Shown here piece after piece: positions 4,059-64,000 of a stretch of 64,000 nt of DNA (position 1 is the first letter of the stretch; each line of letters opens with the position of its first letter). The stretch is from Dendrobates tinctorius (taxonomy: Eukaryota). Position numbers and translations under genes: made by a program. The notes under the pieces are model-generated. The model was not told the DNA's origin. It ran no database searches and worked only from the letters and a program-made list of their open reading frames with translations. Location of the stretch: contig NW_027361826.1 in NCBI RefSeq assembly GCF_039654945.1, positions 19,344,001-19,408,000 on the forward strand, written 5' to 3'.

Positions 4059-6796
4059 TCCCGGCTCTCACTGAAACCTGGATCCGGCAGTCAGATACTA
4101 CCGTTGCTGCTGCTCTTTCATACGGGGGGCTTCACTTCTCTCATACCCCAAGATCAGACAATAGAGCTGGTGGAGGCGTTGGTCTGCTCCTATCACCAAA
4201 ATGTACCTTTCAGGTTATCCCTCAAGTACCCTCACTTGTCTTCCCTTCTTTTGAGGTCCATGCCGTCAGACTCTACACCCCCTTCTCCATGCAAGTGGCG
4301 GTGGTGTATCGTTCTCCCGGCCCCTCCCATCAGTTCCTGGATCATTTTGCCACTTGGCTTCCACATTTTCTCTCCTGTGACATCCCTACCCTCATCATGG
4401 GAGATTTCAACATCCCCATTGCTCTTCCCCTCTCCCCATCTGCTACTCACCTTTTATCTCTAACCTCCTCATTTGGCCTTTCGCAGCTTACTAATTCTCC
4501 AACACATGAAGACGGAAACTCCCTCGACTTGGTCTTCTCTCGGCTTTGTGCAGTGGATGATTTTGCAAACTCCCCTCTCCCGCTCTCTGACCACAATCTT
4601 CTTTCATTCTCTATAAAGAACTGCCAGGCTGCTCAGGTCACCCCCACTGTCCATACTTATAGAAACATACAGGCCATTAACACCCAGAAACTTCTGAAGA
4701 ACTTGCAGTCTTCATTGGCCCCTATCTCCTCCCTCTCATGTCCTGATTCTGCATTGAAGCATTACAATGAAACACTTCAAAGTGCCCTGGATGAATTTGC
4801 ACCCCCTATAAATAGAACACCACAACACAGACGGCGACAACCCTGGCACACGGTGCAAACACGTTTCCTGCAGCGGTGCTCCAGGTGCGCCGAACGTCTG
4901 TGGAGAAAATCCAATCTACACGAAGATTTCATCCATTTTAAGTTTATGCTTAGAACATACAACACTGCCCTTCACCTCTCAAAACAAACCTATTTCAACA
5001 CCCTCATCACCTCACTGTCCAATAACCCGAAACGTCTCTTTGACACTTTTCATTCTCTACTCAATCCAAGAGTACAGGCCCCAACCACGGAGCTCCGAGC
5101 TGACGATCTGGCCAATTACTTCAAAGAAAAAATTGACCAGATCCGACAGGAAATTATCTCCCAATCACCTCATACCATGCACTGTCCTCCCTCCCCCACT
5201 GCATCTAACTCACTCTCTGATTTTGAACCAGTCACAGAAGAAGAAGTAAGCAGGCTCCTTGCATCTTCTCGCCCAACTACTTGCACCAGTGACCCAATTC
5301 CGTCACATCTCCTCCAGTCCCTTTCCCCTGCTGTCACCCCTCGCCTAACTAAAATATTTAACCTCTCTCTCTCTTCTGGTATTTTTCCCTCCTCTTTTAA
5401 GCATGCCATCATATATCCACTACTTAAAAAACCATCCCTCGACCAAAACTGTGCCGCTAACTATAGACCTGTCTCTAATCTTCCCTTCATCTCTAAACTC
5501 CTGGAACGCCTGGTCCACTCCCGTCTTATCCACTATCTCTCAAAAAACTCTCTTCTCGACCCTCTCCAATCCGGTTTCCGCTCTTTACACTCCACTGAAA
5601 CTGCCCTCACTAAAGTCTCTAATGATCTGCTAACAGCTAAATCAAATGGTCATTACTCCATGCTAATTCTCTTGGATCTCTCTGCAGCATTCGACACTGT
5701 GGATCATCAGCTCCTCCTCACTATGCTCCATTCCATTGGCCTCAAGGACACCGTTCTCTCCTGGTTCTCCTCCTATCTCTCCGACCGCTCCTTTACTGTT
5801 TCTTTTGCCGGTTCCTCCTCCTCTCACCTTCCCCTTACTGTTGGGGTTCCTCAAGGATCGGTTCTAGGCCCCCTCCTCTTCTCCTTGTACACTGCCCCTA
5901 TTGGTCAAACAATCAGTAGATTTGGTTTCCAGTACCATCTCTATGCTGATGACACCCAATTATACGCTTCTTCTCCTGACATCACGCCAGCCTTTCTAGA
6001 AAACACTGGCGATTGTCTAAACGCTGTGTCTAATATCATGTCCTCACTATATCTGAAACTGAACCTGTCAAAGACTGAACTCCTGGTGTTTCCTCCCACT
6101 ACTAATGTACCTATACCCGACATTGCTATTTCTGTGTGTGGTTCCACTATTACTCCCCAGCAACATGCCCGCTGTCTTGGGGTCATACTTGATTCCGAGC
6201 TTTCCTTTGCCCCCCACATTCGATCACTGGCTCGCTCTGGTCATCTGCACCTCAAAAACATTTCTAGAATTCGACCTTTTCTTACTTTTGACTCTGCAAA
6301 GACTCTTACTGTTTCTCTTATTCATTCTCGTCTCGACTATTGTAATTCTCTTTTAATAGGTCTCCCTCTTACCAAACTCTCCCCTCTCCAATCTGTCTTG
6401 AATGCTGCAGCCATGATCATATTCCTCACCAATCGTTACACCGATGCCTCTACCTTGTGCCAGTCATTACACTGGCTACCCATCCACTCCAGAATTCAGT
6501 ATAAACTTATTACCCTCACCCACAAAGCCCTCCATGGCTCAGCACCACCCTACATCTCCTCCCTTGTTTCAGTATACCACCCTACCCGCGCCCTCCGTTC
6601 TGCTGATGACCTGAGGTTAGTATCCTCAATAGTCAGAACCTCCCACTCCCGTCTCCAAGACTTTACACGTGCCGCGCCAATTCTTTGGAATGCACTTCCC
6701 AGGTCAATACGATTAGTCCCCAATCCCCACAATTTAAAGCGTGTTCTGAAAACGCATTTATTCAGACTGGCCTATCGCCTCAACACATTAACCTAA
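4057..6796 (+). CDS. L2 ORF2 (APE endonuclease + RT), N-terminally truncated but uninterrupted
   Basis: Motifs [46 protein letters not shown] and YADD. The start at 3983 in the ORF track is read-through from the Tc1 TIR and (TA)n. Confidence 0.85.
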
Positions 6797-28544: not shown

Positions 28545-28680
28545 GGAATCCTTGGAGACGGGAGTGGGAGGTTCTGATTATTGAGGATGTTAACCTCAGG
28601 TCATTAGCAGAAGGAAGGGCACGGGTATGGTGGTAGACTGAGACGAAGGAGGAGATGTAGGGTGGTGCTGAACCGTAGAG

Positions 28681-28849
28681 CAGGGTTCCCCAACTCCAGT
28701 CCTCAAGGTCCACCAACAGATCATGTTTTCAGGATTTCCTTAGTATTGCTCTGGTGATAATTGCATCACCTGTGCAATATGCAATACAATGGAAATCCTG
28801 AAAGCATGATCTGTTGGTGGGCCTTGAGGACTGGAGTTGGGGAACCCTG
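28681..28849. mobile_element. 169-bp palindromic hAT (Charlie-like) MITE
   Basis: Near-perfect hairpin cagggttccccaactccagtcctcaagg...ccttgaggactggagttggggaaccctg with an 8-bp TSD ccgtagag on both sides. Confidence 0.9.
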
Positions 28850-31800
28850 CCGTAGAGTGCTTTGTGGGTGAAAGTGATGAGTTTATTTTGAACTCTACAT
28901 CGTATGGGCAACCAGTGCAATGACTGGCACAGGGTAGAGGCATCGGTGTAGCGGTTGAAAAAGACTATCATCCTGGCTGTTGCATTCAGGACAGATTGGA
29001 GAGTGAAGAGTTTGGTAAGAGGGAGGCCGAGTAGTAGAGAGTTGCAATTGTCCAGACGAGAATGAATAAGAGCTACAGTAAGAGTTTTTGCCGAGTCAAA
29101 GGTAATAAATGGTCTAATTCTAGAAATGTTTGAGGTGTAGATGACAAGAGTGGGCGATTGATCGGATGTGGGAAGTGAAGAAAAGATCTGGCTCAAAGAT
29201 GGCAATAAGACATCGGGCATGTTGCTGGGGAGTAATGGTAGAACCACACATGGAGATGGCAATATTGGGCATAGGTAGGTTAGTGGAGGGAGGAAACGCA
29301 AGGAGTCCAGTTTTTGACAGGTTCAGTTTTAGATAGAGGGAAGATGTAATGGAGAATCGGGAGAGAACAGTGTTCTTGAGGTCTGTAGAGAGGAGCATAG
29401 TGAGGAAGCGCTGGTGATCCACAGTGACGAATGCTGCAGAGAGATCCAGGAGAATCAGCATGGAGTAGTGACCATTAGACTTAGTTGTTAGTAGATCATT
29501 TGACACTTTAGTGAGGGCAGTTTCGATAGTGTAAAGAGTGGAAACCAAATGTAGAGGGTCAAAAAGAGTTATATGGGTGATACAGGATTAGATGAGTGGA
29601 CCAAACGTTCCAGGAGTTTGGTGATGAGGAGGAGAGTAGAGACAGGTCTATAGTTAACAGCGGAGTTCTGGTCGAGGGATGTGTGTTTGTTTTTTGTTTT
29701 TTTTTCTAAATAATGGATGCATGCTGACGTGTTTAAATGAGGAGGGAGATACCAGAGGAAAAGGAGAGATTTAGTTGGGTGAGTGGTGACATCTGGTAAA
29801 ATGGACTGGAGGAGATGTGAGGGAATAGGATCACTGGTGCAAGTAGTAGGGTGAGAAGATGCAAGGAGCTTGATCACTTCTTGTTTGACTGCTTCAAACA
29901 CAGAATATAAGCAAGATGCAGTGCGGGAGGGAGGAGAATGCATAACATTAGGAGATTGTGAGAAAATTTCCTGTCGGATATGGTCAATTTTTTTCTTTGA
30001 AATAATTGGCCAGATCATCAGTGTTGAGGTCGTTGGTGGAGGCCCACACTGTTTGATTGAGGTGAAAGTGAAAAGTATCAAAGAGTTGTTTAGGATTATT
30101 GGATAGTGGGGTGATGAGGATATTAAAGTACATTTGCTTGGGGCGGTGAAGGGCGTAGTTGTTTGTTTTAAGCACAATATAAAATCTCCAATTTCAAGAT
30201 AAATAAGATGAAAATAAAAATATTGAAATACTGAAGTAATGTCCCCTCCAAATGACTTTTATCACCTTATGGGGGCACAATGTGTAAAATAAAATAATTG
30301 TAAAATTAACACACGAAATGTATTAATAAAATAAAATAAAAATGCTATTGTTAATCCAAATTGCTGTTAACCCTACCCCTGTAAAAACCTGTCTGATATA
30401 TGAAAATAATTGTTACAGGATGGAAAATATATTTTTAAATGTATATTAGTGGTCCTTTCTTGCCTTATAAAAATGGGGGGAAAACCCCTTATTTTCTCAC
30501 GGATATATCAGCACAAATAAGAGCGAAGAATATAACCGTAACATAAACATGAAGCACTATGCATCACAAAAAAATGCACAAAAATAACTTTTTTACAGCT
30601 CTTTCAACCACACGCATGGACAAAAAGAAAAAAAAGTGGCAGAAATGGGGTGTAAGTGGCCAATCTTGAAATGGGTAAAGTTCCCACTTTAGTGCTAAGA
30701 AACATTAATGAATTAAGAAGAAAACTGTTTGCTAAAAGTGTTCCTCTAGTCATTGTAGTGACAGTGCCACGTGTAACCCTGGACCTTTGGCTTGGTCTGA
30801 CAGCAGTATATGTAGATGGCTATGAGGGCACCAGTGTCAGCCATGTTGCTAAATGGTAGACAAAGGTTGAAGCAATTTACATTCCTGACAGTTGTAATAT
30901 GGTTCAGAAGTCAGAATTGAGTCATCCAATAGATAAAGACTGTTTGTTCTTTTTTTTTTTATTTGAAAAAAATAAAATAAAAAACGTTTGATATATTGCA
31001 AGGACATGCCTCGGCCCCATGTGGCTGCATTCACTCTAAAGAATCTGAGCCTCTGACAGGGTCTCTGTACCATAAACCTCCATCTAAATAAATAACGTGA
31101 CTTACCCCTCCGTAAGGCTAAGCTTACATGTGCTCATTACTTGTGTCCGTTTGCAAAATGGCTCCCACACAGAAGGAGCAATGTTTATCAATGTGGTCGT
31201 TTCAATGAACATTATTCCCAAACAGGCTAAAAATCTGTTGCAAAAGGATCACATTAAGGGCTCGTTCACACCACCGTATATTCGGTCTATGGAAAAAATG
31301 AACAGCACTCGGACCAATGTTATTCAATGGGGCGATTACTGTCACTGACTAAATCTACGTGTGAAAAAATGGCAGCGTGCTCTAGTTTGTTACAGAAACT
31401 GGATGAAGCTCACCCATTCAATCTATCGGTGCGCCAAAAAAAGTAGGATGCCACAAAGCCACAGTATAACATCCGACTATACGGTTACAGTGCAGTTCTG
31501 TAACATGGGAAACTGTCAATGTTCCTATAAATGATGAAACACTGCTGTATAAAACGGATAGTAAAGGGATGACAAGTGAGAAACAAAAAGCCCACTTTCT
31601 GGATGAAGCTGTGAACCACATTTTATGCGCTTGTGGGAACCTGCCCTTTGCGCTAGGCGCATCAATTTTTCAGATTTAAATTAGTGTGAAAAAAAGCAAA
31701 CAAATGGATTCTATATGGACAAAGATTTTGGTATAGAATTCATCTCGAAATTTGCTTTATATATGACACACGTGAATATACCTAAAGCTGTAAAACCTTT

Positions 31801-42326: not shown

Positions 42327-43791
42327 GTAAGTATTTATGCATGTCATGGCAGGTTTTTTATTTTTGCATCTTTGAATTTAATGTAAAGATGAGAACATGG
42401 CAGGTAAGTGATGTGAGTGAAGAGTGTGCGAGCCATCATATGAAGTAATGACTTGTCGCCAGGATATCCCACTGGTTGGGATCTTCTGGATAAAGAAGCT
42501 GCAGCAATGACCTAAAGCTATGATGTAGCGCCATTCACATCATGCAGCCAGAAACATAGCTCCATATGAGGGCTGCAGGAGGGCTTACTCTGTCGCCTCA
42601 TTGGGGGACACAGAACCATGGGTGTTATGCTGCTGTCCACTAGGAGGCAACACTATGCATAATCTGAAAAAGATTAACTTTGGCTACTCCTCTGCAGTAT
42701 ACACCCCTGGACGGCGTCAGCCTTCTCCAGTTTTTGCTTAGTGTCGCATAGGAGGCACACCTAAAAAAAAATTTTCACTCTGTTTTTTCTTTTCCGGATG
42801 ACAGATGAAGAAAAGTGGGTCTCCTGTGAGACTCCCGGCATGGCTCCTTCCTCGGACCCCTATTATGGGGTGCCCGGTTGAAGTTGAGATGGCTGTTCCC
42901 CATTTCGCTCCTTCCCCAGTCCTGCGGGTGCTGGTTTGAAGTCGAGACCTCCCTCCTTCCCCAATTCCTTTTGGTCTTGGGTTGAGGTTGAGGCGAGGAA
43001 GAAGCCCCCTGATGGTGACAGCAGCACCCTCCCTAATCCCCCTCTGGGGGAATTAGGTTGAGACGCCTCAGGTATTGTCTGTACCACAGCAATCTGCAGC
43101 TCACAGTATCCAGGGATCCCAGCCCAGCTGCGGGCTCCTGTCGGGGCTGGGGGGGGAGTGCGGGCAGGCATGGCACATACAGACACAGGGCTCCCTGCGC
43201 CCCTGTCTCTGCGGCAGCACCAGCTCCATAGCGCCTCAGGGGGACCCATCACAGTGCCCCACTTCCGATTGTGGCCCCACCGCTATCCTGCCTTTCAATC
43301 CGAGGGGGTCCGGTTCAGATCTGACCCCCCTCCCGGACTTCCGCGCCGGCCTGGAGCCCTTTCTGGGCATCGGTAACTAATTTAGGCCACGGCTTCGGCC
43401 TAGCTGAGGTCGCCGCCTCCTCTCCGCCCCCGGATGAAAAATATGACACTCTACGGTGTCATAGAAGGGGCGGATCGAGACAGGGCACGTTTTTACACAT
43501 CTATGCGTGCTCTTTCTCAGCTCTCCGCCCCCTTCTTCTCCCTCCTCATCCTCTCGGCGGCCACTTCTGCTGCAGGCATCAGCAGCACCACACCAGCCAG
43601 TCTCCGTAGGGCACAGAACTGTGGATCTTCGGTGCTGGACCCAGGGGCACGCTGGTGGGGTAAGATCACAGCTTGGGTTTTTTACTCAGCTGTGAATCCA
43701 GATTCCCTGTAAGGCACTCCTATAGGTCTTTCCCTGCATAGCCACCCCTGTAGGGCCCTCTCATAGCCAGCCCTTCCGCACTCTGTGCACT

Positions 43792-45325
43792 ATGCCGGGC
43801 TCAAGGTCCAAGAGAACCAGGCAGGACTGCTTTTATGCACTCTCCCCAGTGGCAGCACGTACCCGCACTGTCGGGACTGTATCCAGAATACTGGGTCAGA
43901 ACCCCAAGAGGCTCCTACCAATGCTTCTGTGGCTGCTACCACGCCGGAATGGGCTACCCAGATGTCGCAGTCTATGATGCAGTCCATAGATAACCTAACC
44001 TCCACATTGCTCCAGGCTCTGCATTGTCATGTCTCGGCTATGAGCGTTACCCAGCAAAGGGACAGCTCCACTCAGGGACAGGCCGTTTCTGGCTCTCCCA
44101 GACGTAAGCGCACCCACACGTCGCCTTCCTCTGCGTCATCCCATAGCACACGGTCATCCCCCTCTAGGAAGAGACATCGTAGTTCCAGGTCACCTAGACC
44201 GTCCCCTACCAGAGACAGACAACGCAGATCTCCACAGCGATCCCCGACGACAGAAGGCCTTTGCCCCAGCTCGCCCACCAGGGAACGCCTCAGCGATACG
44301 CAGGATTCGGAAGGCATCTGTGACTCCGACTCAGACAACGAAACGGTCTCTGGTCCCTTGTCCCCCTAGCAATACAGCACTAATTGAGGACATAATATCT
44401 TCCATCCATCAGGTGCTGGACATTTCCGATCCAACCCCGGAAGCCCCAGAACACAAGATTTGCTTTGAAGGTGTTCTGAAACCACCTAAGGTCCTCTCTA
44501 ACCACCCGGAATTTCAGGCGATCCTTACTAAGCAGTTTTTGCAGCCTGAGAAGAAATTCACCAATTCCAAATATTTGGAGGCTAGGTACCCCTTCCCACA
44601 AAAGGACACCAAGGAGTGGACAGATCCGCCTGAAGTGGACCGCCCAGTCTCTAGGCTAGCAGCACAGACCCTCCTATCACTGCCAGATAGCTCAACCCTC
44701 AGGGACGCTGTAGAACGCATGGCTTGTTCAGTTTTCGAAGCGGCAGGGGCCTCCCTGGCTCCCTCGTTCGCTTCAGTATGGGCGGCCAAGGCCATTCTGG
44801 CTTGGGCCAAAAAATTGCAAACTGGCCTCCAAGCTTCAAACCCTGAGCTGTCGGACCAAGCCGTTCAAATAGCAGTGGTAGCAGATTACATTCTTCATGC
44901 AGCCCTGGATTCCGCAAGAGGTGTAGCGGGATAGCATCAAACGCCATCACGATTCGGCGTATCCTCTGGCTGCGGGAATGGAAAGCGGATGCGGCCTCAA
45001 AGAAGTCCCTCACGCATCTCCCGTACCTCAGTGGACGGCTTTTCGGTGAAAAGTTGGACACAATGATATCCAATGCCACTGGGGGTAAGAGTACCTATCT
45101 CCCTCAACTAAAACCTAAACGCACGTTCAAACGGCGTAACCAAACACGATTCCGATCCTTTCGGAATTCTTCGACTGGTCTGCCTTGCGTCCAGCACAAA
45201 ATCGTAACCGCTCTCCACGCAGGGACAACCCATGGGCAGCGCAGAGGCCAGACAGGAACTGGCAGTAGAGAACAGGCCAGGTGAAGCCCAAAGGAGGAAA
45301 ACCTCAGAATTTCTCCTCATCATGA
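43792..45325 (+). pseudogene. DIRS-A Gag-like ORF1, frameshifted
   Basis: Motifs YPHCRDC, W.DPPEVD.PVSRL, RRILWLREW and ATGGKS. Homologous to 62239-63806. Confidence 0.8.
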
Positions 45326-48255: not shown

Positions 48256-50285
48256 GGACCTGTCTGCACAATATTCGTCTCTTGCTTCCCACCCAGGGAC
48301 TGCTTTAGGACGTCCCATGGTTCTGTGTCCCCCAATGAGGTGACAGAGTAAAGGAGATTTTTGTGTACTCACCGTAAAATCTTTCTCTTGGCCTCTAATT
48401 GGGGGACACAGCTCCCACCCTGTTGCCCTTACGGGCCGTTGTTTACGGTGAGTTCTCATATTGTTCTTTGAGCTCGTACATGGTGGCCTTATTACAGGCA
48501 TGGTTGTGTTATTTCTGTTAACTTCCTCCTAATGCTTTTGCACAAAACTGGAGAAGGCTGACGCCGTCCAGGGGTGTATACTGCAGAGGAGGAGCCATAG
48601 TTAATCTTTTTCAGATTATGCATAGTGTCGCCTCCTAGTGGACAGCAGCATAACACCCATGGTTCTGTGTCCCCCAATTAGAGGCTAAGAGAGAGAGATT
48701 TTACGGTGAGTACACAAATCTCCTTTTTTGGGTCCAATAATGGTCGCAAGGGTCAGACACCCACAGTGATGATATTAAGGTGTAATCAGCAATGTGCCGT
48801 AACATTACAAGATGGGACATTGATTTTTGCATCGGAAATGTGAGCAGTTTGCCCAGCACAATAAACACTGAACAGCAACCTACTGATAAGTGCTGTTTTT
48901 TTTTTTCAAGCAGTGCTGGCTTCCCCCTCTATTTTCTTGTTGTTGGTTTGTGGCTCACCACCACTGTTGCCGTGCACGCTTGGTTATGTCCGCCATAATT
49001 TTTCTGTGTTCATTGTGATGGATTAGGCTGCTGTGCACACACACGGCAGCCCCACCCTGCCCCAAGCTTTATTTAATTGTGCACCTGTGTCTGGACCAAC
49101 ATCGCCCTTCATCTATGTTTGCTGGTCAGGCAATGTGTGGAGGCCATTCCTGATATGTCTGTGTTCAGACCTGGTTGGCCTTCATCTGCACTTGCTTCAT
49201 CTGGCTTCATGGGAGCGATCCAGCAATGTTCAGGTACAGATTGCACTTGATGTGGTGATGCTCTAAATGTATTTAGGAGGCCGTAATGGCACAGCATTTA
49301 TTAAAAATATATAGAGTAGGACCCCCCATATGAGATTGCCTTGGCGCGGCGGGGTGGCTCAATTGAATTGATCAATTTCTTTTGCTAAATATCTCATTTT
49401 GAATACAGCTAGACATTATGTGCATATGCACTCCAATTGATGCGTTCTAACCTTAAGCAGTGCTGGCTTCCCCCTCTATTTTCCTGTTTTTTTTTAATGT
49501 ATTGTAATAAATATAAAGTGTATGCATATTGGCGATGAGAGAGATATATATATACTTTTTAACCCCTTCACGACCAATGACGCCACATAGGCGTCATGAA
49601 ACCTGGTTCAAATCTGACCAGTGACGCCTATGTGGCGTCATAACTTCAAAGCCCCCCTGCGGGTCGGGTGACCGGGGTCACTGAAAGGTCACCCGACCCG
49701 CAGATACAGGGGGCTTTGTAATTCACCACAGGGGGCGTGGCTTCGCCCCCACGTGGATACGATCGCTCTGATTGGCTGTTTCACTTTTAACAGCCAATCA
49801 GAGCGATAGTAATATTTCATCAATGAAAATTGATGAAATATTACAATCCAGCCATGTCCGACGCTGCTGTAGCATCGGACATGGCTGGAGACACCGATTC
49901 CACCCCCCCCCCCCACCGGCGATCGCCCCCCCGCAACTGAATGACAGCGGCGATCTGCCGCCGCTGTCATCATCTGCCCCCCTCCCATTCCCTCTGCTCC
50001 CCGCCAGCCTCCGATCCCCCCTCACCCCCCCCGGTACCTCCTGAGTCCCCCCGTCCCTCCCGGTGTCCCTCGGGTCCGGATGATGGGCGCCGCCATCTTT
50101 GAAAATGGCGGGCGCATGCGCAGTGCGCCCGCCCGAATCTGCCGGCTGCAGATTCCATTCTTTCATTTTGATCACTCTTACAGTGATCAAAATGAAAGAA
50201 AAAGTAAATAAACCCCCCGATTATCACCCCCATAGGTAGGCAGAACTAATAAAATAAAGAAAATATTTTTATTTTTACTTTTCCA

Positions 50286-54674: not shown

Positions 54675-57600
54675 TGAATGTCTTTCGCGCACAAAGGTGG
54701 AACCGTAATTTCCTTTACAATATGATGGCTGATAAGACTTGATCCTGCCATTTTCTTTGCCATCTTTGCTGTAATCTTTAGAAAAGCTTATATATTTTTT
54801 TTTAATTAAAGTAAGCCTATGTTTTTTCGGAGCTGCATTCAGAATTTACCTGACCCAATACACATTAGAAAAAAATGTACCTGCCGATATCGATGGGATC
54901 AGCCTACCATCCTTATATGGGAGATGGGGGACCTCTCGACTCTTGCACAACAGATCATCAGAATAGGACAGCATCCAAACTTGAGTGAAGCAAAAAATCT
55001 TTTTCTCGTTCGCCTTATAGGGGGACACAGAGACCATGGGTGTATGCTGCTGCCACTAGGAGGCTGACACTACGCACAAAAAAAGGTTAGCTCCTCCTCC
55101 GCTGTCACCCCACCGACCGGCAGGGAATTCCTCAGTTTAGCTTAGTGTCAGTAGGAGGTGGACACGGGTCTTTGATTAGACCCATATATACCTTGATGTG
55201 CGTCGTTCCTTTTCAGGTCTTTCCGGAGGGATACAGAGTGAATAGTCACATCTGTACTCCCACAAGGAGTCTGTGAGTACGGCGTGTACTGCCACCCCGT
55301 ACCCTCGCAGATCTCCGTAGCAGGACCAGCAGCCTTCCAGGCGGACGCCAACACGAAGACATGTCAGCGATTCAAAGGGTCCTTATCAGTCTCCCACCCA
55401 CTCGCCTACCAGAGCCTGTCGTTTGGACGAGACGCGGACGTCCTTCAGGAACATGGTACCTTTATTCTGGCCCGGGACGGGTGAGTATTGGGACCCTTTG
55501 GTCTCCTCAGTGGGCACGGTGGCGTTCCCCTTGGAGCAGGGATGCGGTAGCGCTGCGGACACCTGCGGTCATCCTGCGCATCCGGGCAGCCTCCGCTCTC
55601 TTTTACAGCCCGTTCCCTTCTCCCCTGACAGGTTTCTTTTGCGGCAGCGCTCATGCTGCGGCACATCCGCGCCGACCCCGTGCTGACAGGCGGCCGCCGC
55701 TATTAATTTAGGCCCCGGCTTCAATTCGGGCCTACTTCAGCGTCGCGGCCACGCCCCCCCGCCCCTTTCTACTAAGCGGGCTTCTCTCCCGCCCGTTCCA
55801 GGTCCTCCCACCGCCTCTTTCTTGCACCCCAGCCTGTTATTGCCCACCGCCTCTTTCTTGCACCCCAGCCTGTGGTTGGCCAGCGGGCCGTGCCTCTTTC
55901 AGTCTGGCGGTTAGCTCCGCCCTTCTTCTTCCCCTGGAAGCGCGCGTCTTCCCCATTCCTCTCAGGCGGTCCCCATCTTCTCAGCCTGTCAGCAGGACAC
56001 GTACGGTCAGACGGATATCGCTCTCTGGGCCTGTCAGCCGGATTTCGCTCTGACCTGCAGCTGCAGACAAGTCGGATAGCATTGTCTCTGGGGACACCGG
56101 ACCATGAGTAGCTCTGCATCTGCAGACTGACACCCTCCTCTGCCTTCTGTCCCCCAACCTTCCGGCACTACCTCAGTTATCACTATGTCTAACTCTAAGT
56201 CTGATCGTACCCGCTCTACGGCTCCCCCCTGCACTCTAGTCAAGTACTTTGCGTGCTCTTCTTGCAATCGCAAACTTCCCTCAGGTCAGTCCACGCCTCT
56301 CTGCCTGGACTATAGCAATCCAATTCAGCCTGACACCGCCCAGGAGCCATCTATGGCACCAGGTGAGAGTGAGCCCCCCATGCCTGGCTGGGCTTCATCT
56401 CTTTCACAATCAGTGGCAGACCTCACCAGAGTGTCTCAGTCCCTAGTAGCCTTTCTGGATAAGTTGCCCCTGGACACTTCTGCAGGGTCCAGCAGGTCTC
56501 AAGAGATTTACTTCTGAGTCAGCCAGCGTTAGTCCCAAAAGACCCAGGCAGGATCTCCAGCCGGAAGCCTCTCCTCGTCCCATCTCACCGCATAGTCCTT
56601 CTCAGCAGCCTCCTTCCCGGGCCTCCTCTCCTGAGTCAGGTGAAGCGTTCTCGGACAGGTCTTCTGAGGGGATTTTAGAGCTGGATTCGGACCAGGATGC
56701 GAACATGAAGGTTACGGTGCAGAACCTCATTGCAGCGATTCACCAGACCTTCGAGATTGCTGACCCCCCCCCCCCCCCCCCCCCTGCGAAATCCTCAGAT
56801 CGGGAGGTTTCGTTCAGACGGGTGTAAACACCCTCCAGGGTATTTCCTTTCCATTCCGAGTTTGGAAAGATTTTTACCAGGAGAAGAGAGGATCCGACCA
56901 GATGCTTTCAAAGAGGAAAGCGTCTCGGCGTACTGTACCCATTTGCTAAAGAGCTCACGGACAACTGGTCTGCTTCTCCCTCGGTGGACCCGCCCGTGTC
57001 CAGTCTTTCTAATAACACGGTTCTCCCGCTTTCAGGCATGGCGTCTCTAAAGGATTCTAATGATAGGATTATAGAATCCCTAGCTAAGTCTGCCTTCGAA
57101 GCGGCTTCAGCGGCGGTATGTCCAAGCTTTGCTTCATCTTGGGCTGCAAAGGCCATGGCAACTTCGGCAGAGGATCTTCGTCAGGACATCCTAGATAAAG
57201 CACAACCAGAGCAATTGGCTGATCTCGCCAATCAGATTTCCCATGCGGGGGATTATCTGCTTTCTGCTTCTTTGGATGCCGCAATCCTGCGCAAGTTCAG
57301 GCGTCGAGCAACGTTGTGGCAATCCGACGTACAATTTGGCTCAAGGTCTGGCAGGCGGACTTGTCTTCTAAAAAGTCTCTTACTAATCTGCCTTTTCAGG
57401 GAGTACGCCTCTTTGGATCCCAATTGGACCAGATTATTAAGGATGCCACCGGAGGCACGAGTTCCCTCCTCCCTCAGTCCAAGCCTCGCAGACCTCCACT
57501 AAGGCGTCCGTTTCGACCCTTTCGGGCTTTCCACCATTTCAATACGGCGAAGAACCCATCCAACCAACAAAGACCGCAGGCGCGCCAAGATAGAAAGTTT

Positions 57601-57699
57601 CCTTCAGGCCCACTCCCTCCTGGCGATCCCACTCTTCCCAGGGCAGACCATCCAGATCCAGATCTCGACTGTCTACATCTGCATGACTATCGTCGGACT

Positions 57700-59585
57700 C
57701 CCGAGGGTCCCTTCCAATTGGGAGGGCGACTTCTCTTCTTCAGGGACGTCTGACTGGCCTCAGTAGAGGACGCTTGGGTCAGGGAGGTTGTATCGTCGGG
57801 ATACAAGATAGAGTTCGTCTCTCTTCCACGGGATCGTTTCTTCGAATCCCGTCCTCCAAAAGATCCAGCCTTGATCCCGGGGTTCTTTACGGCCATCGCC
57901 TCTCTCCTCAGTTCCGGGGTGATTGTGCCCATTCCCGACTCGGAGCGGTTCACAGGGTTTTATTCGAACCTTTTTGTGGTGCCGAAAAAAGGCGGGACGG
58001 TCCGGCCCATCTTGGATCAAGCTTCTCAACAAGAGTCCGCCTTCGCCACTTCCGGATGGAGCCGGTTCGTTCGGTAATCGCTTCCATGGAGGAGCAGGAA
58101 TTCATGTGTTCAATAGACATCCAAGATGCCTATCTACATGTGCCCATATTCTCCGGACATCAGAAGTTCCTGCGTTTTGCGATTCGCCAGGAACATTACC
58201 AGTTTGTCGCGCTGCCCTACGGTCTCGCCACCGCTCCCAGAGTCTTCACGAAGATCATGGCTGCGCTGATGGCCTTGTTGAGGATCAGAGGTCTCGTTCT
58301 TTTTCTGTACCTCGACGATATTCTGATCAAAGCTTCCTCTTTTCAACAGGTTCGCCTAAGTTTGACGATCGTCCTAGACACCCTTTCCAATTTCGGGTGG
58401 ATCGTCAACAGGAAAAAGTCCTGACTGATTCCTTCTCAACGTCTTGTGTTTCTGGACCTACTGTTCGACACTCGTCGGTCAAGGGTCTTTCTCCCACGAG
58501 AGAAGATTCTTTCCCTGCAGCAAAATGTACGATCGCTGCAGACCACACGATTTCCGTCCCTCCGAACATCTATGAGGGTCCTGGGAAAGATGGTGGCGGC
58601 GATAGAGGCAGTTCCCTTTGCCCAATTTCACGCTAGACTTCTCCAGCACGCCATTCTGTCGAGGTGGAGCAGGTCGGCTCTGTCCCTGGATCGCCCTGTT
58701 CGTCTTTCATGCCGGATCAAGCGGTCACTCAACTGGTGGTTGACGTCACCTCTCATCCACTTGGGTCAGTCTTTTCTTCCCATTCACTGGCAGATTGTAA
58801 CAACGGATGCCATCCTCCTCGGCTGGGGTGCAGTGTTCCGCAATCACACTGTTCAGGGTCGTTGGTCGACTCAGGAATCGGCTCTGCCGATCAACGTCCT
58901 AGAGATACGAGCGATCTATCTGGCTCTCGTCCACTGGGAGAGGCTGCTCAGGGGCTTGCCTGTCCGGATTCAGACAGGCAATGCCACAGCGGTGGCATAT
59001 GTCAACCGCCAAGGAGGGACACGGAGTGTCTCAGCTCTGGCAGAAGTGTCCAAGATTCTTCATTGGGCAGAGATTTCTGTCCCGACAATTTCCGCGGTAC
59101 ACATTCCTGGCGTAGACAACTGGGCCGCCGATTTTCTCAGCCGCGAGGGTCTCGCGGCGGGAGAGTGGTCCCTACATCCAGAGGTGTTTCATCTGCTCTG
59201 CCGTCGATGGGGAACCCCGGATGTAGACCTGATGGCGTCTCGCCTCAACAGGAAGGTCCCACAGTTTGTTTCCAGGTCTCGAGACCCTCTGGCAGTGGGC
59301 GCCGACGCTCTGGCCATTCCTTGGTCGCAGTTCGAACTCCCCTACCTGTTCCCTCCTCTGCCGCTTCTTCCCAAGCTGTTGAAGATCAAAGTAGAAGGTA
59401 TTCCAGTCATTCTCATCTCCCCGAATTGGCCCAGAAGGTCTTGGTTCGCGGACATTGTCAACCTTCTCGCGGACGCCCCCTGGAAGCTTCCAGACAGGGC
59501 AGATCTGCTGTCTCAAGGCCCAATTTGCCACCCCAATTCTCGGCCGCTCAATTTAACGGCGTGGCTGTTGAGACTGAGGTTTTGA
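57700..59585 (+). pseudogene. DIRS-B RT / RNase H / methyltransferase-like ORF
   Basis: Motifs DIQDAYLH, LPYGLATAPRVFTK, YLDD, TTDA, INVLE, HIPGVDN.AD.LSR, DLMAS and YLFPP. Confidence 0.88.
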
Positions 59586-60606
59586 AACGGGCAGGATTCT
59601 CCGATCGAGTAATTCATACCATGATCCGAGCAAGAAAGCCATCATCTTCCAAAATTTATTATCGTACTTGGAAGGCCTATTTCCCCTGGTGTGAGGCCAA
59701 TGACATCGTGCCCATGTGCTTTTCGCTCCCTTCTGTTCTGGCGATTCTTCAGGCAGGGCTGGATGCGGGACTTGCCCTCAGTTCTTTGAAGCGTCAGGTT
59801 TCGGCGCTATTTTATTTCAGAAGACGTTGGCCTCCCGCCCTCAGGTCAAAACCTTTCTTCAGGGCGTGGCTCACACGGCTCCTCCGTACCGAGCGCCCGT
59901 GGTTCCATGGGATCTTAATCTGGTTCTTGAGGTTCTGCAAGGTCCTCCTTTTGAACCTCTCAGGGATGTTTCTCTTTCTCTCCTTTCTTGGAAGGTAGCT
60001 TTTCTGGTGGCCATCATTTCCATCCGGCACGTGTCAGAATTGGCGGCTCTTTCTTGCCGCTTGCCTTTTTTGGTACTTCACCAGGATAAGGTAGTTCTGC
60101 GGCCTCTGCCCTCTTTTCTTCCGAAGGTGGTGTCCTCCTTTCACCTCAATGAGGATATTGTTCTGCCTTCCTTCTGTCCGAGTCCATCTCATCCTCGGGA
60201 GCGGTCCTTGAACAAGCTGGATCTGGTCAGGGCGCTGAGAGTCTATCTGTCTAGGACGACTTCCTTGCGAAAGACAGACTCTCTTTTCGTCATTCCAGAT
60301 GAGGTGCGGAAAGGTCACCCGGCCTCCAAGGCTACTATTGCTCGCTGGATCAGATCGGCAATTTTGGAGGCCTACCGGGTTAAGCATCGAGTGGCTCCTC
60401 CGGGGATCAGAGCGCACTCTACCCGGGCAGTGGGTGCTTCCTGGGCGGTACGCCACAGAGCTTCCGCGCTGCAGCTTTGCAAAGCTGCAACCTGGCCATC
60501 GGTTCACACGTTTGTGAAATTCTACAAAGTCCACACCTACGCTTCGGCGGACACCAGCCTAGGTAAAAGGATTTTGCAGGCTGCGGTGGTGAGTCCGCTG
60601 GCCTGA
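59570..60606 (+). pseudogene. DIRS-B tyrosine recombinase
   Basis: Motifs WDLNLVL, RHVSELAAL, AHSTRA and ATW.S.HTF.KFY. Frameshift near 59810. Confidence 0.88.
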
Positions 60607-61026
60607 TGGAAGTTTGTTTCCCACCCCAGGGACTGCTTTAGGACGTCCCATGGTCTCTGTGTCCCCCAATAAGGCGAACGAGAAAACAGGATTTTTGGGT
60701 TGCTTACCGTAAAATCTGTTTCTCGGAACCTTCATTGGGGAACACAGCACCCTCCCATGTTTTTCAGCTCCTTTTCTTCCTTTGGTTGATTGGTTACAGT
60801 TGAGTTGTTTGTTCTGTTTTCAATCTTTTCTGTTGCTTCTCCTACTGCTTTTCTCACTAACTGAGGAATTCCCTGCTGGTCGGTGGGGTGTACACTGTGG
60901 AGGAGCTAACCTTTTTTTGTGCATAGTGTCAGCCTCCTAGTGGCAGCAGCATACACCCATGGTCTCTGTGTCCCCCAATGAAGGCTCAGAGAAACAGATT
61001 TTACGGTAAGCAACCCAAAAATCCTG

Positions 61027-64000
61027 TTACTCTGTCGCCTAATTGGGGGACACAGAACCGTGGGTGTTATGCTGCTGTCCACTAGGAGGCGACACTATGC
61101 ATAATCTGAAAAAGATTAACTTTGGCTCCTCCTCTGCAGTATACACCCCTGGACGGCGTCAGCCTTCTCCAGTTTTTGCTTAGTGTCGCAAGGAGGCACA
61201 CCTCTTTTCTTCCGTTTTTTTCCTTTTTTCGTCCGGAAATACAGATGAAGAAAAGAGGGTCTCCAGCGAGACTCCCGGCATGGCTCCCTCCTCGGTCCCC
61301 TATTAGGGGTACCCGGTTGAGGTCGAGGTGGCTATTCCCCATGTCGCTCCCTCCCCAGTCCCTCGGGTCCTGGTTCGAGGTCGAGACCCCCCTCCTTCCC
61401 CAACCCCTTTAAGGGGTCTGGGTTGAGGTTGAGGCGAGGATGAAGACCCCCTGACGGTGACAGACGCACCCTCCCTAATGCCCCGCAGGGGGCATTAGGT
61501 TGAGACGCCTCAGGTAGTTTCGGAGATCAGGCAGCATTCCGCAGCTTCCAGGGACCCCAGGCCGGCTGAGGGATCCTGTTGGGGCCGGGAGAGGGTGCGG
61601 ACTGGATGGCACAGCAGAGACAGGGCTTTTTCTGCGTCCCTGCCTCTGCAGCAGCAGCGGCTCCATAGCGCTTCAGGGGCCCCACATACAGAAACCGCTA
61701 CCCCTGCTACCCCCACTGCTATCCAGTTGACCATTCTGGGGGGGTCTGGTACAAGTCCGCCCCCCCCCCCCTCCCAGACTACCGCGCCGCTCTGGAGCCC
61801 TCCTGGGCATCAGGCCTCTAATTTAGACCGCGGCTTCGGCCTAGCCGAAGCCGCCGCCTTTTCCCGCGCCCCGCCCCGCCCCCCGGATGACCAAAATGAC
61901 ACACTGGAGTGTCATAGAAGGGGCAGATTGAGGCAGAAAGGGGGCGTTTTTACACAGCCCAGCGCGCCCTTTTCAGCTCTCCGCCCCCTCCTCCCTCTCC
62001 TCAGAGTCCCGGTGGCCATTTTTTCTGGATGAGATCCAGGAGAGGAGCATCACAGCGGTCTCCGGGGGGCACAGAACTGGGATCTGTCGGCGCTGGACCT
62101 AGGGGCACACCGGTGGGGTAAGCTCACAGCTGGGTTCTCATTACTCAGCTGTGAATCTATACTTCCTGTAAGGCTCTCTGTGGGTTCCCTCTGCGTAGCC
62201 ACCCCTGTACGATCCCTTATAGCCAGCCTCTGTGCACTATGCCGGGCTCAAGGAAGAGAACCAGGCAGGAATGTTTCTATGCATTCTGCACAGCCTGCAA
62301 AGCCACGCTCCCTAGTGGCAGCACGTATCCGCACTGCCGGGACTGCATCCTGAACTCTGGGTCAGAACCCCAGGGAGTCCCTACTGACGCTTCAGTGTCA
62401 CAGGCCACGCCGGAATGGGCAACTCAGATGTCTCAGGCCATGACACAGTCCATAGACAACCTAACTGCTACATTGCTGCAAGCTCTGCAGAGTCGGGCCC
62501 CGGCTATGGACGGTACACAGCAAACGGACAGCTTGTCTCAGGAACATGCTGCTTCCGACTCTCACAGACGTAAGCGGACCCACAGGTCTCGATCACCTGA
62601 GTCGCACTATAGTACAAGGTCGTCCCCCTCCAGGGAGAGACAGCGTCATTCCAGGTCTCCTGGGCAGTCCCCTGCCACAGACAGTACAATTTACCACAGG
62701 GATCCCCCACCACAGAAGACCCCCTCCCCAGGTCGCCCTCCAGGGATCACCTTAGCGAGGCACAGGATTCGGAGGGCATCTGTGACTCCGACTCAGATAA
62801 CGAAACGGACAGGTCCGTGGTACCTTCTCCCCCTAGCAATACAGCGCTAGTTGAGGACATAATTTCTGCCATTCATCGGGTGCTAAAAATTCCAGATTCG
62901 GCCCCGGAAGTCCCAGAACATAGGATTTGCTTCGAAAGTGTTCAGAAACCACCTAAGGTCTTCCCTAATCACCATGAGTTTGAGAAAATACTTACCAAAC
63001 AGTTTGCGCAGCCTGAGAAAAAATTCGCTAATCGCAAATATTTGGAAGCGAAGTACCCCTTCCCACAGAAAGACACCAAACAATGGACAGATCCACCTGA
63101 AGTGGACCCTCCGGTTTCTAGGCTAGCAGCGCAGACTTTACTCTCTCTGCCGGATAGCTCAACCCTCAGGGACGCAGCAGACCGGCAAGTAGAACGCATG
63201 GCTCGTTCTATTTTCGAAGCGGCAGGCGCCTCTCTGGGCCCTGCGTTTGCTTCAGTTTGGGCAACCAAGGCCATCCTGGCTTGGGCCAAAAAACTACAGG
63301 AGGGTCTTCAGGCTTCAAATCCTGAGCTCTCGGACCAAGCGGTCCAGATAGCAGTGGTAGCAGACTACATGATTCATGCAGCCCTGGATTCCGCCAGAGG
63401 TGTAGCGGGAATAGCATCAAACGCCATCACGATCCTACGCATCCTCTGGCTGCGAGAATGGAAAGCGGATGCGGCCTCAAAGAAGTCCCTCACGCGACTT
63501 CCGTATTTTACTGGAAGACTTTTCGGCGAAAAGTTGGACACCATGATAGCCAATGCCACTGGGGGTAAGAGTACTTCTCTCCCTCCACTAAAACCGAAAC
63601 GCACGTTTAAATGAAGAAACCAGACGCGATTCCGATCCTCTCGGAATTCCTCGGGCTGGTCTGTTTCGCGCCCAGTGCAAAACCGTAACCGTTCTCCACG
63701 CAGGGACAACCCACGGACGCAGCAGCGACCGGACAGGGCTTGGCAGTCGAAAGCAGGCCAAGCGAAACCCAAGGGAGGAAAACCTCAGAACTTCGCTTCA
63801 TCATGACTCGCGTCCTCCGGAAGACACCCCACCAGTAGGCGGCCGACTTTTACTCATTCAGCAAGTCTGGCTGCCTATTACAGAAGACAGGTGGGTCAGG
63901 GAAATAGTGTCTTCCGGATACAAGATAGAGTTCACTTCCGTTCCACCGAACCGGTTCTTCCTTTCTATTCCTCCAACGCCACCAGAAAAGGCTTGTGCTT
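61027..64000 (+). mobile_element. DIRS1-type retrotransposon (copy C, same family as A), truncated by the window end
   Basis: Left ITR is nearly identical to 42585-42760. Gag at 62239-63806 (frameshift, stop) and the start of pol. Confidence 0.93.

Follow-up and report, generated by a model that had tools for sequence, protein, structure and literature searches.

A covarying multi-hairpin RNA domain in the leader of frog DIRS-like retrotransposons, putatively a Gag or packaging platform

One clade of DIRS-like retrotransposons in frogs carries, in the leader upstream of gag, a domain of ~250 nt that is very probably a selected RNA structure of the sense strand. The domain was recognised in two elements of the window (i.e., the whole 64-kb stretch of DNA that was analysed) and in leaders from related frogs, and across ten distinct leaders the double substitutions that keep base pairs intact exceed controls that preserve the phylogeny of the copies. 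Taken as comparative evidence, this argues firmly that the helices were kept by natural selection while the elements were active. It probably serves the element as a functional RNA signal. We consider it fairly likely to be a cis-acting folded part of the sense-strand, full-length DIRS transcript that would provide a putative platform for Gag or packaging; a role in Gag binding or packaging specifically is advanced more tentatively, as one possible use of the fold.

Host elements and architecture of the domain

Three DIRS-like elements, designated copies A, B, and C, lie within the window, which is dendrobatid frog DNA with protein relatives in Ranitomeya, Dendrobates, and Anomaloglossus. Copy A extends on the plus strand from 42590 to ~48690; its left inverted terminal repeat (ITR; 42597–42734, plus strand) has its partner at 48544–48681, with arms that are 97% complementary, and its internal complementary region (~48314–48346) is an inverse copy of the first 33 nt of the element. 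Copy C begins at 61032, runs past the end of the window, and is 79% identical to copy A over 1.2 kb, while copy B (54994–61002) belongs to a family other than that of A and C. The DIRS-like assignment follows from the mapped ITRs, internal complementary region, Gag C-terminal part, and pieces of reverse transcriptase and recombinase, with the reading frames broken in copy A, as they are in copy C.

The gag AUG is at 43792 in copy A and 62239 in copy C, giving a leader of ~1.05 kb. In copy C, the C-terminal part of gag (62817–63611) matches the Pfam family LAP2alpha at 46.5 bits, above the cut-off; the C-terminal domain of LAP2alpha is itself derived from a DIRS Gag, and the match fits this origin. 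The N terminus of Gag bears a Cys4 motif (CxxC...CxxC) followed by a basic Arg/Ser-rich tract. This zinc motif is present in all DIRS families encountered here, including those with different leaders, and thus offers no co-occurrence signal with the hairpin domain. For DIRS elements at large, neither the primers nor the packaging signal nor the way in which expression is controlled is known (PMC7192593), and minus-strand cDNA is a known single-stranded intermediate (PMC7192593). Apart from the ITRs and the internal complementary region, the non-coding features on record comprise a 3' hairpin put forward as a primer (PMC7192593, PMC9210276, PMC3266345). Two further kinds of repeat were seen in the window: (i) a satellite of at least 68 head-to-tail copies of a 34-nt unit, 88–96% identical (32462 to ~34800), and (ii) several long inverted-repeat blocks at 4937–6659 and 28551–30184, ~22–25 kb apart and 77–88% complementary, which probably mark two copies of another repeat in opposite orientation.

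The leader domain lies ~70–330 nt inside the left ITR and ~730–950 nt upstream of the gag AUG. In copy A, where all of its parts are on the plus strand, it opens with a single-stranded purine tract, GAAGAAAAG (42807–42815), directly 5' of the first hairpin and identical in nine of the ten leaders, Anomaloglossus copies included. Hairpin H0 (42817–42834) has the form GGGUCUC–loop CUGU–GAGACUC, with 42817–42823 pairing with 42828–42834 (97% of alignment cells pair). It is followed by the long-range stem P1, the 5' strand of which (CGGCAUG, 42836–42842) includes the conserved start codon of a short upstream frame and pairs with 42901–42907 (98.6% of cells pair). Enclosed by P1 is module 1 (42844–42888), a bulged hairpin of the form CUC-CUUC...GAAG-UU-GAG, and module 2 (42908–42946), a second bulged hairpin, sits directly 3' of P1 and is also present in the Anomaloglossus leaders. 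Module 3 (42953–42992), with a U.G at its base in CUUC:GAGG, and module 4 (43029–43062), which has the form CUC-C-CUAAU-CCCCC...GGGGG-AUUAG-GUU-GAG and folds alone, were seen in the Ranitomeya-type family (A-type below) only. The domain ends with a sequence resembling a 5' splice site, AG/GUA (43070–43074), which the Anomaloglossus leaders have retained. The same parts recur on the plus strand of copy C (whole domain, 61247–61516), with the purine tract at 61247–61255, H0 at 61257–61274, P1 formed by 61276–61282 with 61340–61346, the first three modules at 61284–61327, 61347–61385, and 61392–61433, the fourth at 61471–61504, and AGGUA at 61512–61516.

An initial annotation of this DNA had reported three repeated bulged hairpins in copies A and C, plus a fourth, related one in copy A; their coordinates and sequences proved correct throughout, and each module folds alone as described. 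Its placement of the modules right after the left ITR holds approximately, since ~110 nt separate the end of the ITR repeat (42734) from the first module. The modular picture was sound yet incomplete: the fold also includes H0, which is its most covarying part, and the enclosing long-range stem P1, and the purine tract GAAGAAAAG likewise lay beyond that description.

The 3' strand of P1 reads CAUUUCG in copy A, against a consensus of CAUGYCG. At 42904, G (as in CAUG) is found in seven of the nine other leaders, with L003 and L010 unreadable in the alignment at this position, and all aligned contigs from sequencing runs read G where copy A reads T; by this comparison, the T of copy A is a private change that disrupts P1. 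Two competing pairings were set aside. The first, a 13-nt pairing of 42842–42854 with 42994–43006, is strong in copy A only, is not kept in copy C or L004, and was treated as a copy-specific alternative. The second, a small hairpin (AUGG...CCAU) 3' of module 1, competes with P1, which is longer, covaries, and is present in the Anomaloglossus leaders.

Modules 3 and 4 are 92% identical in sequence within the Ranitomeya-type family and show little covariation. A covariance model of the domain (see below) matches module 3 weakly, over the part of the model that describes module 2 (E 0.016), and module 3 is thus probably a duplicate of module 2. After module 2, the Anomaloglossus leaders bear other hairpins, including one read by eye as CUCC-AUCC...GGAU-NC-GGAG, which may correspond to module 4. 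Half-sites recur along the domain at irregular spacing (CTCCTTCC three times, GGTTGARGTYGAG three to four times); a regular tandem repeat was rejected, with none found by TRF and spacings of 64, 45, and 76 nt. Within the window, the GAAGAAAAG pattern occurs in both leaders and in one unrelated minus-strand match, GAAGAAAAGAGGG (60109–60121), which is antisense to the recombinase region of copy B and was dismissed as a chance match.

Two observations concern the sequence 3' of the domain. A perfect 10-nt palindrome, CCUGUACAGG, which could serve in dimerisation or as a DNA site, follows the AG/GUA after module 4 in four of the six A-type copies (L004, ~5896–5915; L001; L003; L010) and is decayed in window copies A and C. 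Further downstream, ~130 nt before the gag AUG, GGUGGGGUAAG is a good match to a 5' splice site (43654–43664 and 62112–62122), and all DIRS families seen (including those in L005, L002, L003, and L007) have G/GUAAG or GUGAGU in the corresponding position; GGUGGGGUAAG is a candidate for a conserved donor from which subgenomic RNAs would be spliced. Both donor-like motifs (43070 and 43660) are thus located 3' of the domain.

Descent, covariation, and strand

Further leaders were obtained by tracing annotated proteins of related frogs to their genomic loci. Ten distinct leaders resulted, six of Ranitomeya type (copies A and C, L001, L003, L004, and L010) and four from Anomaloglossus. L001, L010, and L003 come from Ranitomeya imitator, with L003 containing its leader twice as a segmental duplicate, and L004 comes from Ranitomeya variabilis; over the module region, the Ranitomeya copies are 88–90% identical to copy A. 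Anomaloglossus baeobatrachus contributes four elements, of which L005 contains three and L006 the other; in these, the C-terminal part of Gag is 39–42% identical to that of copy C and the leaders are barely aligned by BLAST. At L005 1913–13400, one Anomaloglossus DIRS (left end at 5432) is inserted in another (left end near 1790). The order of parts is nonetheless kept in the Anomaloglossus leaders, namely GAAGAAAAG, a hairpin, C(C/A)GCAUG, a CUC-CCUU...AAGG-UU-GAG module, CAUGC(C/U)G, and a CUUC...GAAG module, so that the Ranitomeya and Anomaloglossus types share the succession of purine tract, H0, P1 around module 1, and module 2. In a phylogeny of the recombinase, the two lineages with this leader group as sisters (support 93/92), apart from the other DIRS families in these loci, and the domain was thus inherited with the element.

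The initial annotation had called for a search of other DIRS leaders with a covariance model. The model built from the ten leaders (142 positions, 41 pairs) scores 87–162 bits on the eleven known leaders, i.e., the ten distinct ones plus the L003 duplicate, and finds nothing significant in the leaders of B-type or D-type DIRS or in a Xenopus laevis locus (L132) that is without a left element end and is therefore uninformative; its significant matches are hence confined to known leaders of its own clade. A metagenome scan with a 17-nt leader pattern returned only chance matches in GC-rich contigs, without leader similarity; one of these contigs, labelled as human-gut metagenome, likewise gave no match by BLAST. 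Other families bear hairpins of their own inside the ITR, as seen in copy B and its relatives, L007, and L009. The B-type hairpin, GGGUCU-loop-AGACCC, lies directly 3' of the ITR (window 55166–55183 in copy B, and from L002 17365, L003 23515, and L007 27346), with an invariant stem and a loop of UUGAUU, UUUAUU, or UUCAUU. D-type leaders (L007 5640–5860; L009 5900–6000) contain a bulged hairpin, GGGGGCGACGGA...UCCGAUCUCCCC, followed by GAGCAC-GGGAG...CCUC, and this unit is duplicated in L007. Judged from these loci, a hairpin-bearing leader is a general theme of DIRS in these frogs, and the A/C-type RNA is specific to one clade.

The ten leaders, from two clades, were aligned over 174 columns. 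Standard pairs occupy 92.1% of 406 cells over the 41 pairs, compared with 34–52% when the 3' partners are slid by 1–3 columns, and 13 pairs are changed on both sides, compared with 0–3 after sliding, the structure having been derived from these same sequences; none of 500 column shuffles matched the observed values. As a control that keeps the relatedness of the copies, the 9280 other column pairs of the same alignment were scored in the same manner: a double change together with at least 90% canonical pairing is seen in 12 of the 41 pairs of the structure, where 0.86 would be expected, as against 2.1% of the other column pairs (P ~3e-11). Where both columns vary, 12 of 14 structure pairs stay paired, compared with 6% of background column pairs. 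RNAalifold, run unguided, recovers H0, P1, and the helices of modules 1 and 2.

Covariation is strongest in H0, in which five of the seven pairs are changed on both sides across leaders (variants GGGUCUC/GAGACUC, GGGUCCA/UGGACCC, GGGCCC/GGGCCC, GGGCCCUU/AAGGGCCC, and GGACAC/GUGUUC). In P1, pairs 35:126 and 36:125 switch among G:C, G.U, and A:U, and the central CAUG:CAUG pairs are invariant, which suggests a sequence constraint beyond pairing. At the base of module 1, pairs 46:81 (U:A or C:G) and 48:79 (C:G or U:A) covary, the latter separating the two lineages by C:G versus U:A; in module 2, pairs 130:171 and 134:165 covary. The two compensatory swaps between copies that had been noted at the outset, CUUC:GAAG in A against CCUC:GAGG in C for modules 1 and 2, are real and correspond to pairs 46:81 and 134:165. 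Broken pairs are mostly isolated in single decayed copies, with the exception of 141:156, unpaired in all four Anomaloglossus copies. As we read the table of pairs, it would take a dozen or more independent pair-keeping events, over four helices, to account for these changes. The apices had been described as varying freely while still pairing. This holds for module 3, whose apex is CC-UUUU-GG in copy A and CCCCUU-U-AAGGGG in copy C as claimed, and holds less well for module 1, whose apex is poorly kept in the Anomaloglossus copies (66–77% of cells paired).

The pattern of mismatches bears on which strand folds. G.U accounts for 19 cells at seven sites and A.C, which would be G.U on the opposite strand, for 3 cells, and the U.G of module 3 is kept in every A-type copy; both identify the sense strand as the one that folds and point to RNA rather than minus-strand cDNA (PMC7192593). 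Among the six A-type copies, identity over the module region (0.87–0.90) resembles that of gag and exceeds the 0.70–0.85 of the rest of the leader; summed contig depth over four sequencing runs is also higher over the module region. Variable columns make up 22% of paired and 38% of unpaired positions, and substitutions are spread evenly over codon positions (13/14/14). A coding reading was rejected on this even spread and because no frame is shared: the frames of L005a and L005c differ, L003 and L006 lack the AUGAAG start, and copies A and C differ by a 1-nt indel. Thermodynamics is not decisive here, given that modules folded singly reach only modest energy z-scores (-1.1 to -2.2, with -5.7 for module 4 of copy C only), that whole-region minimum-energy folds differ between A and C, and that the antisense strand folds equally well by energy. 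The conserved, multimerised RNA structure that the initial annotation had proposed is thus supported by covariation in ten leaders from two frog families, strand-specific G.U pairs, and non-coding-like evolution.

Candidate roles of the domain

In the model that we propose, the leader of the sense-strand transcript would fold into the purine tract, H0, P1 over module 1, and module 2, followed in the Ranitomeya type by modules 3 and 4. Each module has a base of two short helices and U-rich bulges with a conserved sequence, whereas its apex can change freely, and the modules would have increased from two or three to four; this combination is consistent with reiterated protein-docking sites. Of the possible binding partners, the element's own Gag, with its N-terminal Cys4 motif and Arg/Ser-rich tract, would be the likeliest; these features, together with the docking-site pattern, favour a Gag-binding or packaging role among the candidates. 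Binding of Gag would then mark the full-length RNA for assembly into particles or ribonucleoprotein, in the manner of a packaging signal. In retroviruses, the packaging signal is as a rule found 3' of the major splice donor; the DIRS domain lies upstream of the donor-like motifs, and this may count against packaging. A more speculative extension, to which we attach less weight than to Gag binding or packaging itself, is that the domain is a cis signal of DIRS replication through which Gag would select, and perhaps pair, genomic RNAs, with GAAGAAAAG and H0 possibly forming a site of plus-strand priming. Were this so, the domain would for the first time open template choice and copying by tyrosine-recombinase retrotransposons to experiment. 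Other roles also have to be weighed, in light of the invariant CAUG and upstream AUG, the invariant GAAGAAAAG, the donor-like motifs, and the sharing of the Gag motif across leader types; we take GAAGAAAAG to resemble both a polypurine tract and a purine-rich splicing enhancer.

Among these, control of translation is the alternative that survives best, though we regard it as unlikely. Here, the AUG in P1 would open a short frame ending in module 1, which together with the hairpins would throttle or redirect ribosomes by shunting or reinitiation. The AUG is invariant in all ten leaders, the invariant CAUG pairs suggest a sequence constraint, and the frame spans 13 codons in five of the six A-type copies and 8–16 codons in copy C and three of the four Anomaloglossus copies (counted by eye), its stop usually falling within the 3' strand of the module 1 base; a leader of ~1.05 kb with structure of about -100 kcal/mol in its first 250 nt would also suit such control. 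However, neither length nor stop is kept in L005c, where the frame is far longer, and copy C is frameshifted; the short-frame peptide is without a coding signature; and the second CAUG simply pairs with the first. In known shunt leaders, moreover, the short frame stops before the stem, whereas here it stops inside module 1, and the gag AUG is more than 700 nt downstream.

Alternatively, and with still lower probability, the domain might by analogy serve as a platform on which host factors act upon unspliced RNA, i.e., for nuclear export, stability, or splice control, with repeated internal loops like those of a constitutive transport element. Its bulged helices are indeed repeated and conserved in sequence, a GAAGAA-type purine tract lies 5' of it, and 5' splice-like motifs follow downstream in every DIRS family seen (AG/GUA after module 4; GGUGGGGUAAG at 43654 and 62112). 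Those motifs may nonetheless be unused; joints in contigs gave no signal of splicing. Related sequence occurs in runs, guessed to be RNA, from two other species, as short Logan contigs of uncertain kind that carry no strand information. One joint, 43074>43326, appears in three runs and is absent from the DNA run; its ends are non-canonical, its flanks short, and the letters inserted at it unknown, so that divergent copies rather than splicing are its most likely source. Nor is there similarity to any Rfam transport element by sequence or model. More broadly, an Rfam search, as the initial annotation had advised, matched the domain to no described family: permissive scans against Rfam 15 of window 42500–44000 and L006 1850–3100 stayed at chance level (best scores, 19.1 bits against a threshold of 90 and 24.9 against 40). 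A tRNA-like or SINE-type origin was likewise rejected; module 2 of most copies has a B box-like GGTTCGAAGTC, but ARAGORN finds no tRNA or tmRNA in window 42500–43900 or L004 5400–6800.

An action at the DNA level is improbable. In this account, the module halves would be repeated transcription-factor sites of an internal promoter or enhancer, likened to the monomers of the mouse L1 5' UTR, or the domain would be a single-stranded DNA structure in second-strand priming with the purine tract as primer. The halves do form direct repeats (three occurrences of CTCCTTCC and three to four of GGTTGARGTYGAG), an ETS-like core is contained in GGAAGGAG on the other strand, and the invariant GAAGAAAAG-N-GGG resembles retroviral polypurine tracts. 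The primers of DIRS are unknown as well (PMC7192593), leaving room for such a site. Against this stand the matched double changes in both arms, unexpected for independent factor sites, and the excess of G.U over A.C (19 versus 3), which fits RNA and neither duplex DNA nor minus-strand cDNA (PMC7192593).

Finally, it is very improbable that the domain has no selected function and that its hairpins were made or "repaired" by template-switch mutation or local conversion in a pyrimidine/purine-skewed repeat and persisted by descent: the multi-base event that turned the module 3 apex of copy C into a perfect inverted repeat, the modest energy z-scores, and the close kinship of copies within a family would allow it, but at least a dozen pair-keeping changes in four helices between lineages with Gag ~40% identical, the presence of G.U intermediates where template switching would yield perfect complements, conservation equal to that of gag, and the pairing retained by 12 of 14 doubly variable pairs over a background of 6% all speak against it.

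Relation to known structured leaders and DIRS features

A full-text literature search found no leader RNA structure described in DIRS, the papers retrieved covering other features (PMC7192593, PMC9210276, PMC3266345), in agreement with the initial annotation, which had known of no such cis element. DIRS elements are abundant in amphibian genomes, and their replication is the least understood among retrotransposons; with a covarying leader domain, binding assays, structure probing, and marked-element tests would have a defined target that can be mutated, and its covariance model should be useful for annotating and subdividing DIRS families.

The closest parallels are the packaging and dimerisation domains of retroviral 5' leaders, such as the twin SL-C/SL-D of MLV Psi and SL1–SL4 of HIV-1, which are likewise sense-strand, multi-hairpin cis domains in the leader of a reverse-transcribing element. 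Serial similar hairpins, nearby donor-like motifs, and a Gag with a zinc motif and basic tract are common to both. Unlike the retroviral domains, it is placed 5' of the donor-like motifs and not between donor and gag, it shows no Rfam similarity, and its host is a tyrosine-recombinase retrotransposon with ITRs in place of LTRs. The shunt leaders of pararetroviruses and foamy viruses resemble it in being long and structured, with a conserved short upstream frame beside stable helices; in DIRS, however, this frame starts in a stem strand, ends in a hairpin, and is not strictly kept in length. With the constitutive transport element of simian type D retroviruses, it shares repeated, conserved internal loops and bulges suited to multivalent protein binding, yet the fold and the loop sequences are different, no Rfam match was obtained, and the DIRS domain is at the 5' rather than the 3' end.

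Closer to home, the described features of DIRS (ITRs, the internal complementary region, and the 3' hairpin of Dictyostelium DIRS-1) belong to the same class of element but act at element ends and in end repair (PMC7192593, PMC9210276, PMC3266345). The leader hairpins of copy B, L007, and L009 share the theme, lying likewise just within the left ITR, but are different RNAs, as the A/C model gives no match to them. On comparative grounds, the domain described here is a new, previously undescribed instance of the structured leader of a reverse-transcribing element, in an order without a known example. Ultimately, structured leaders are familiar from retroviruses, and what the frog elements would add is thus a new instance in an unexplored order, and not a new principle.
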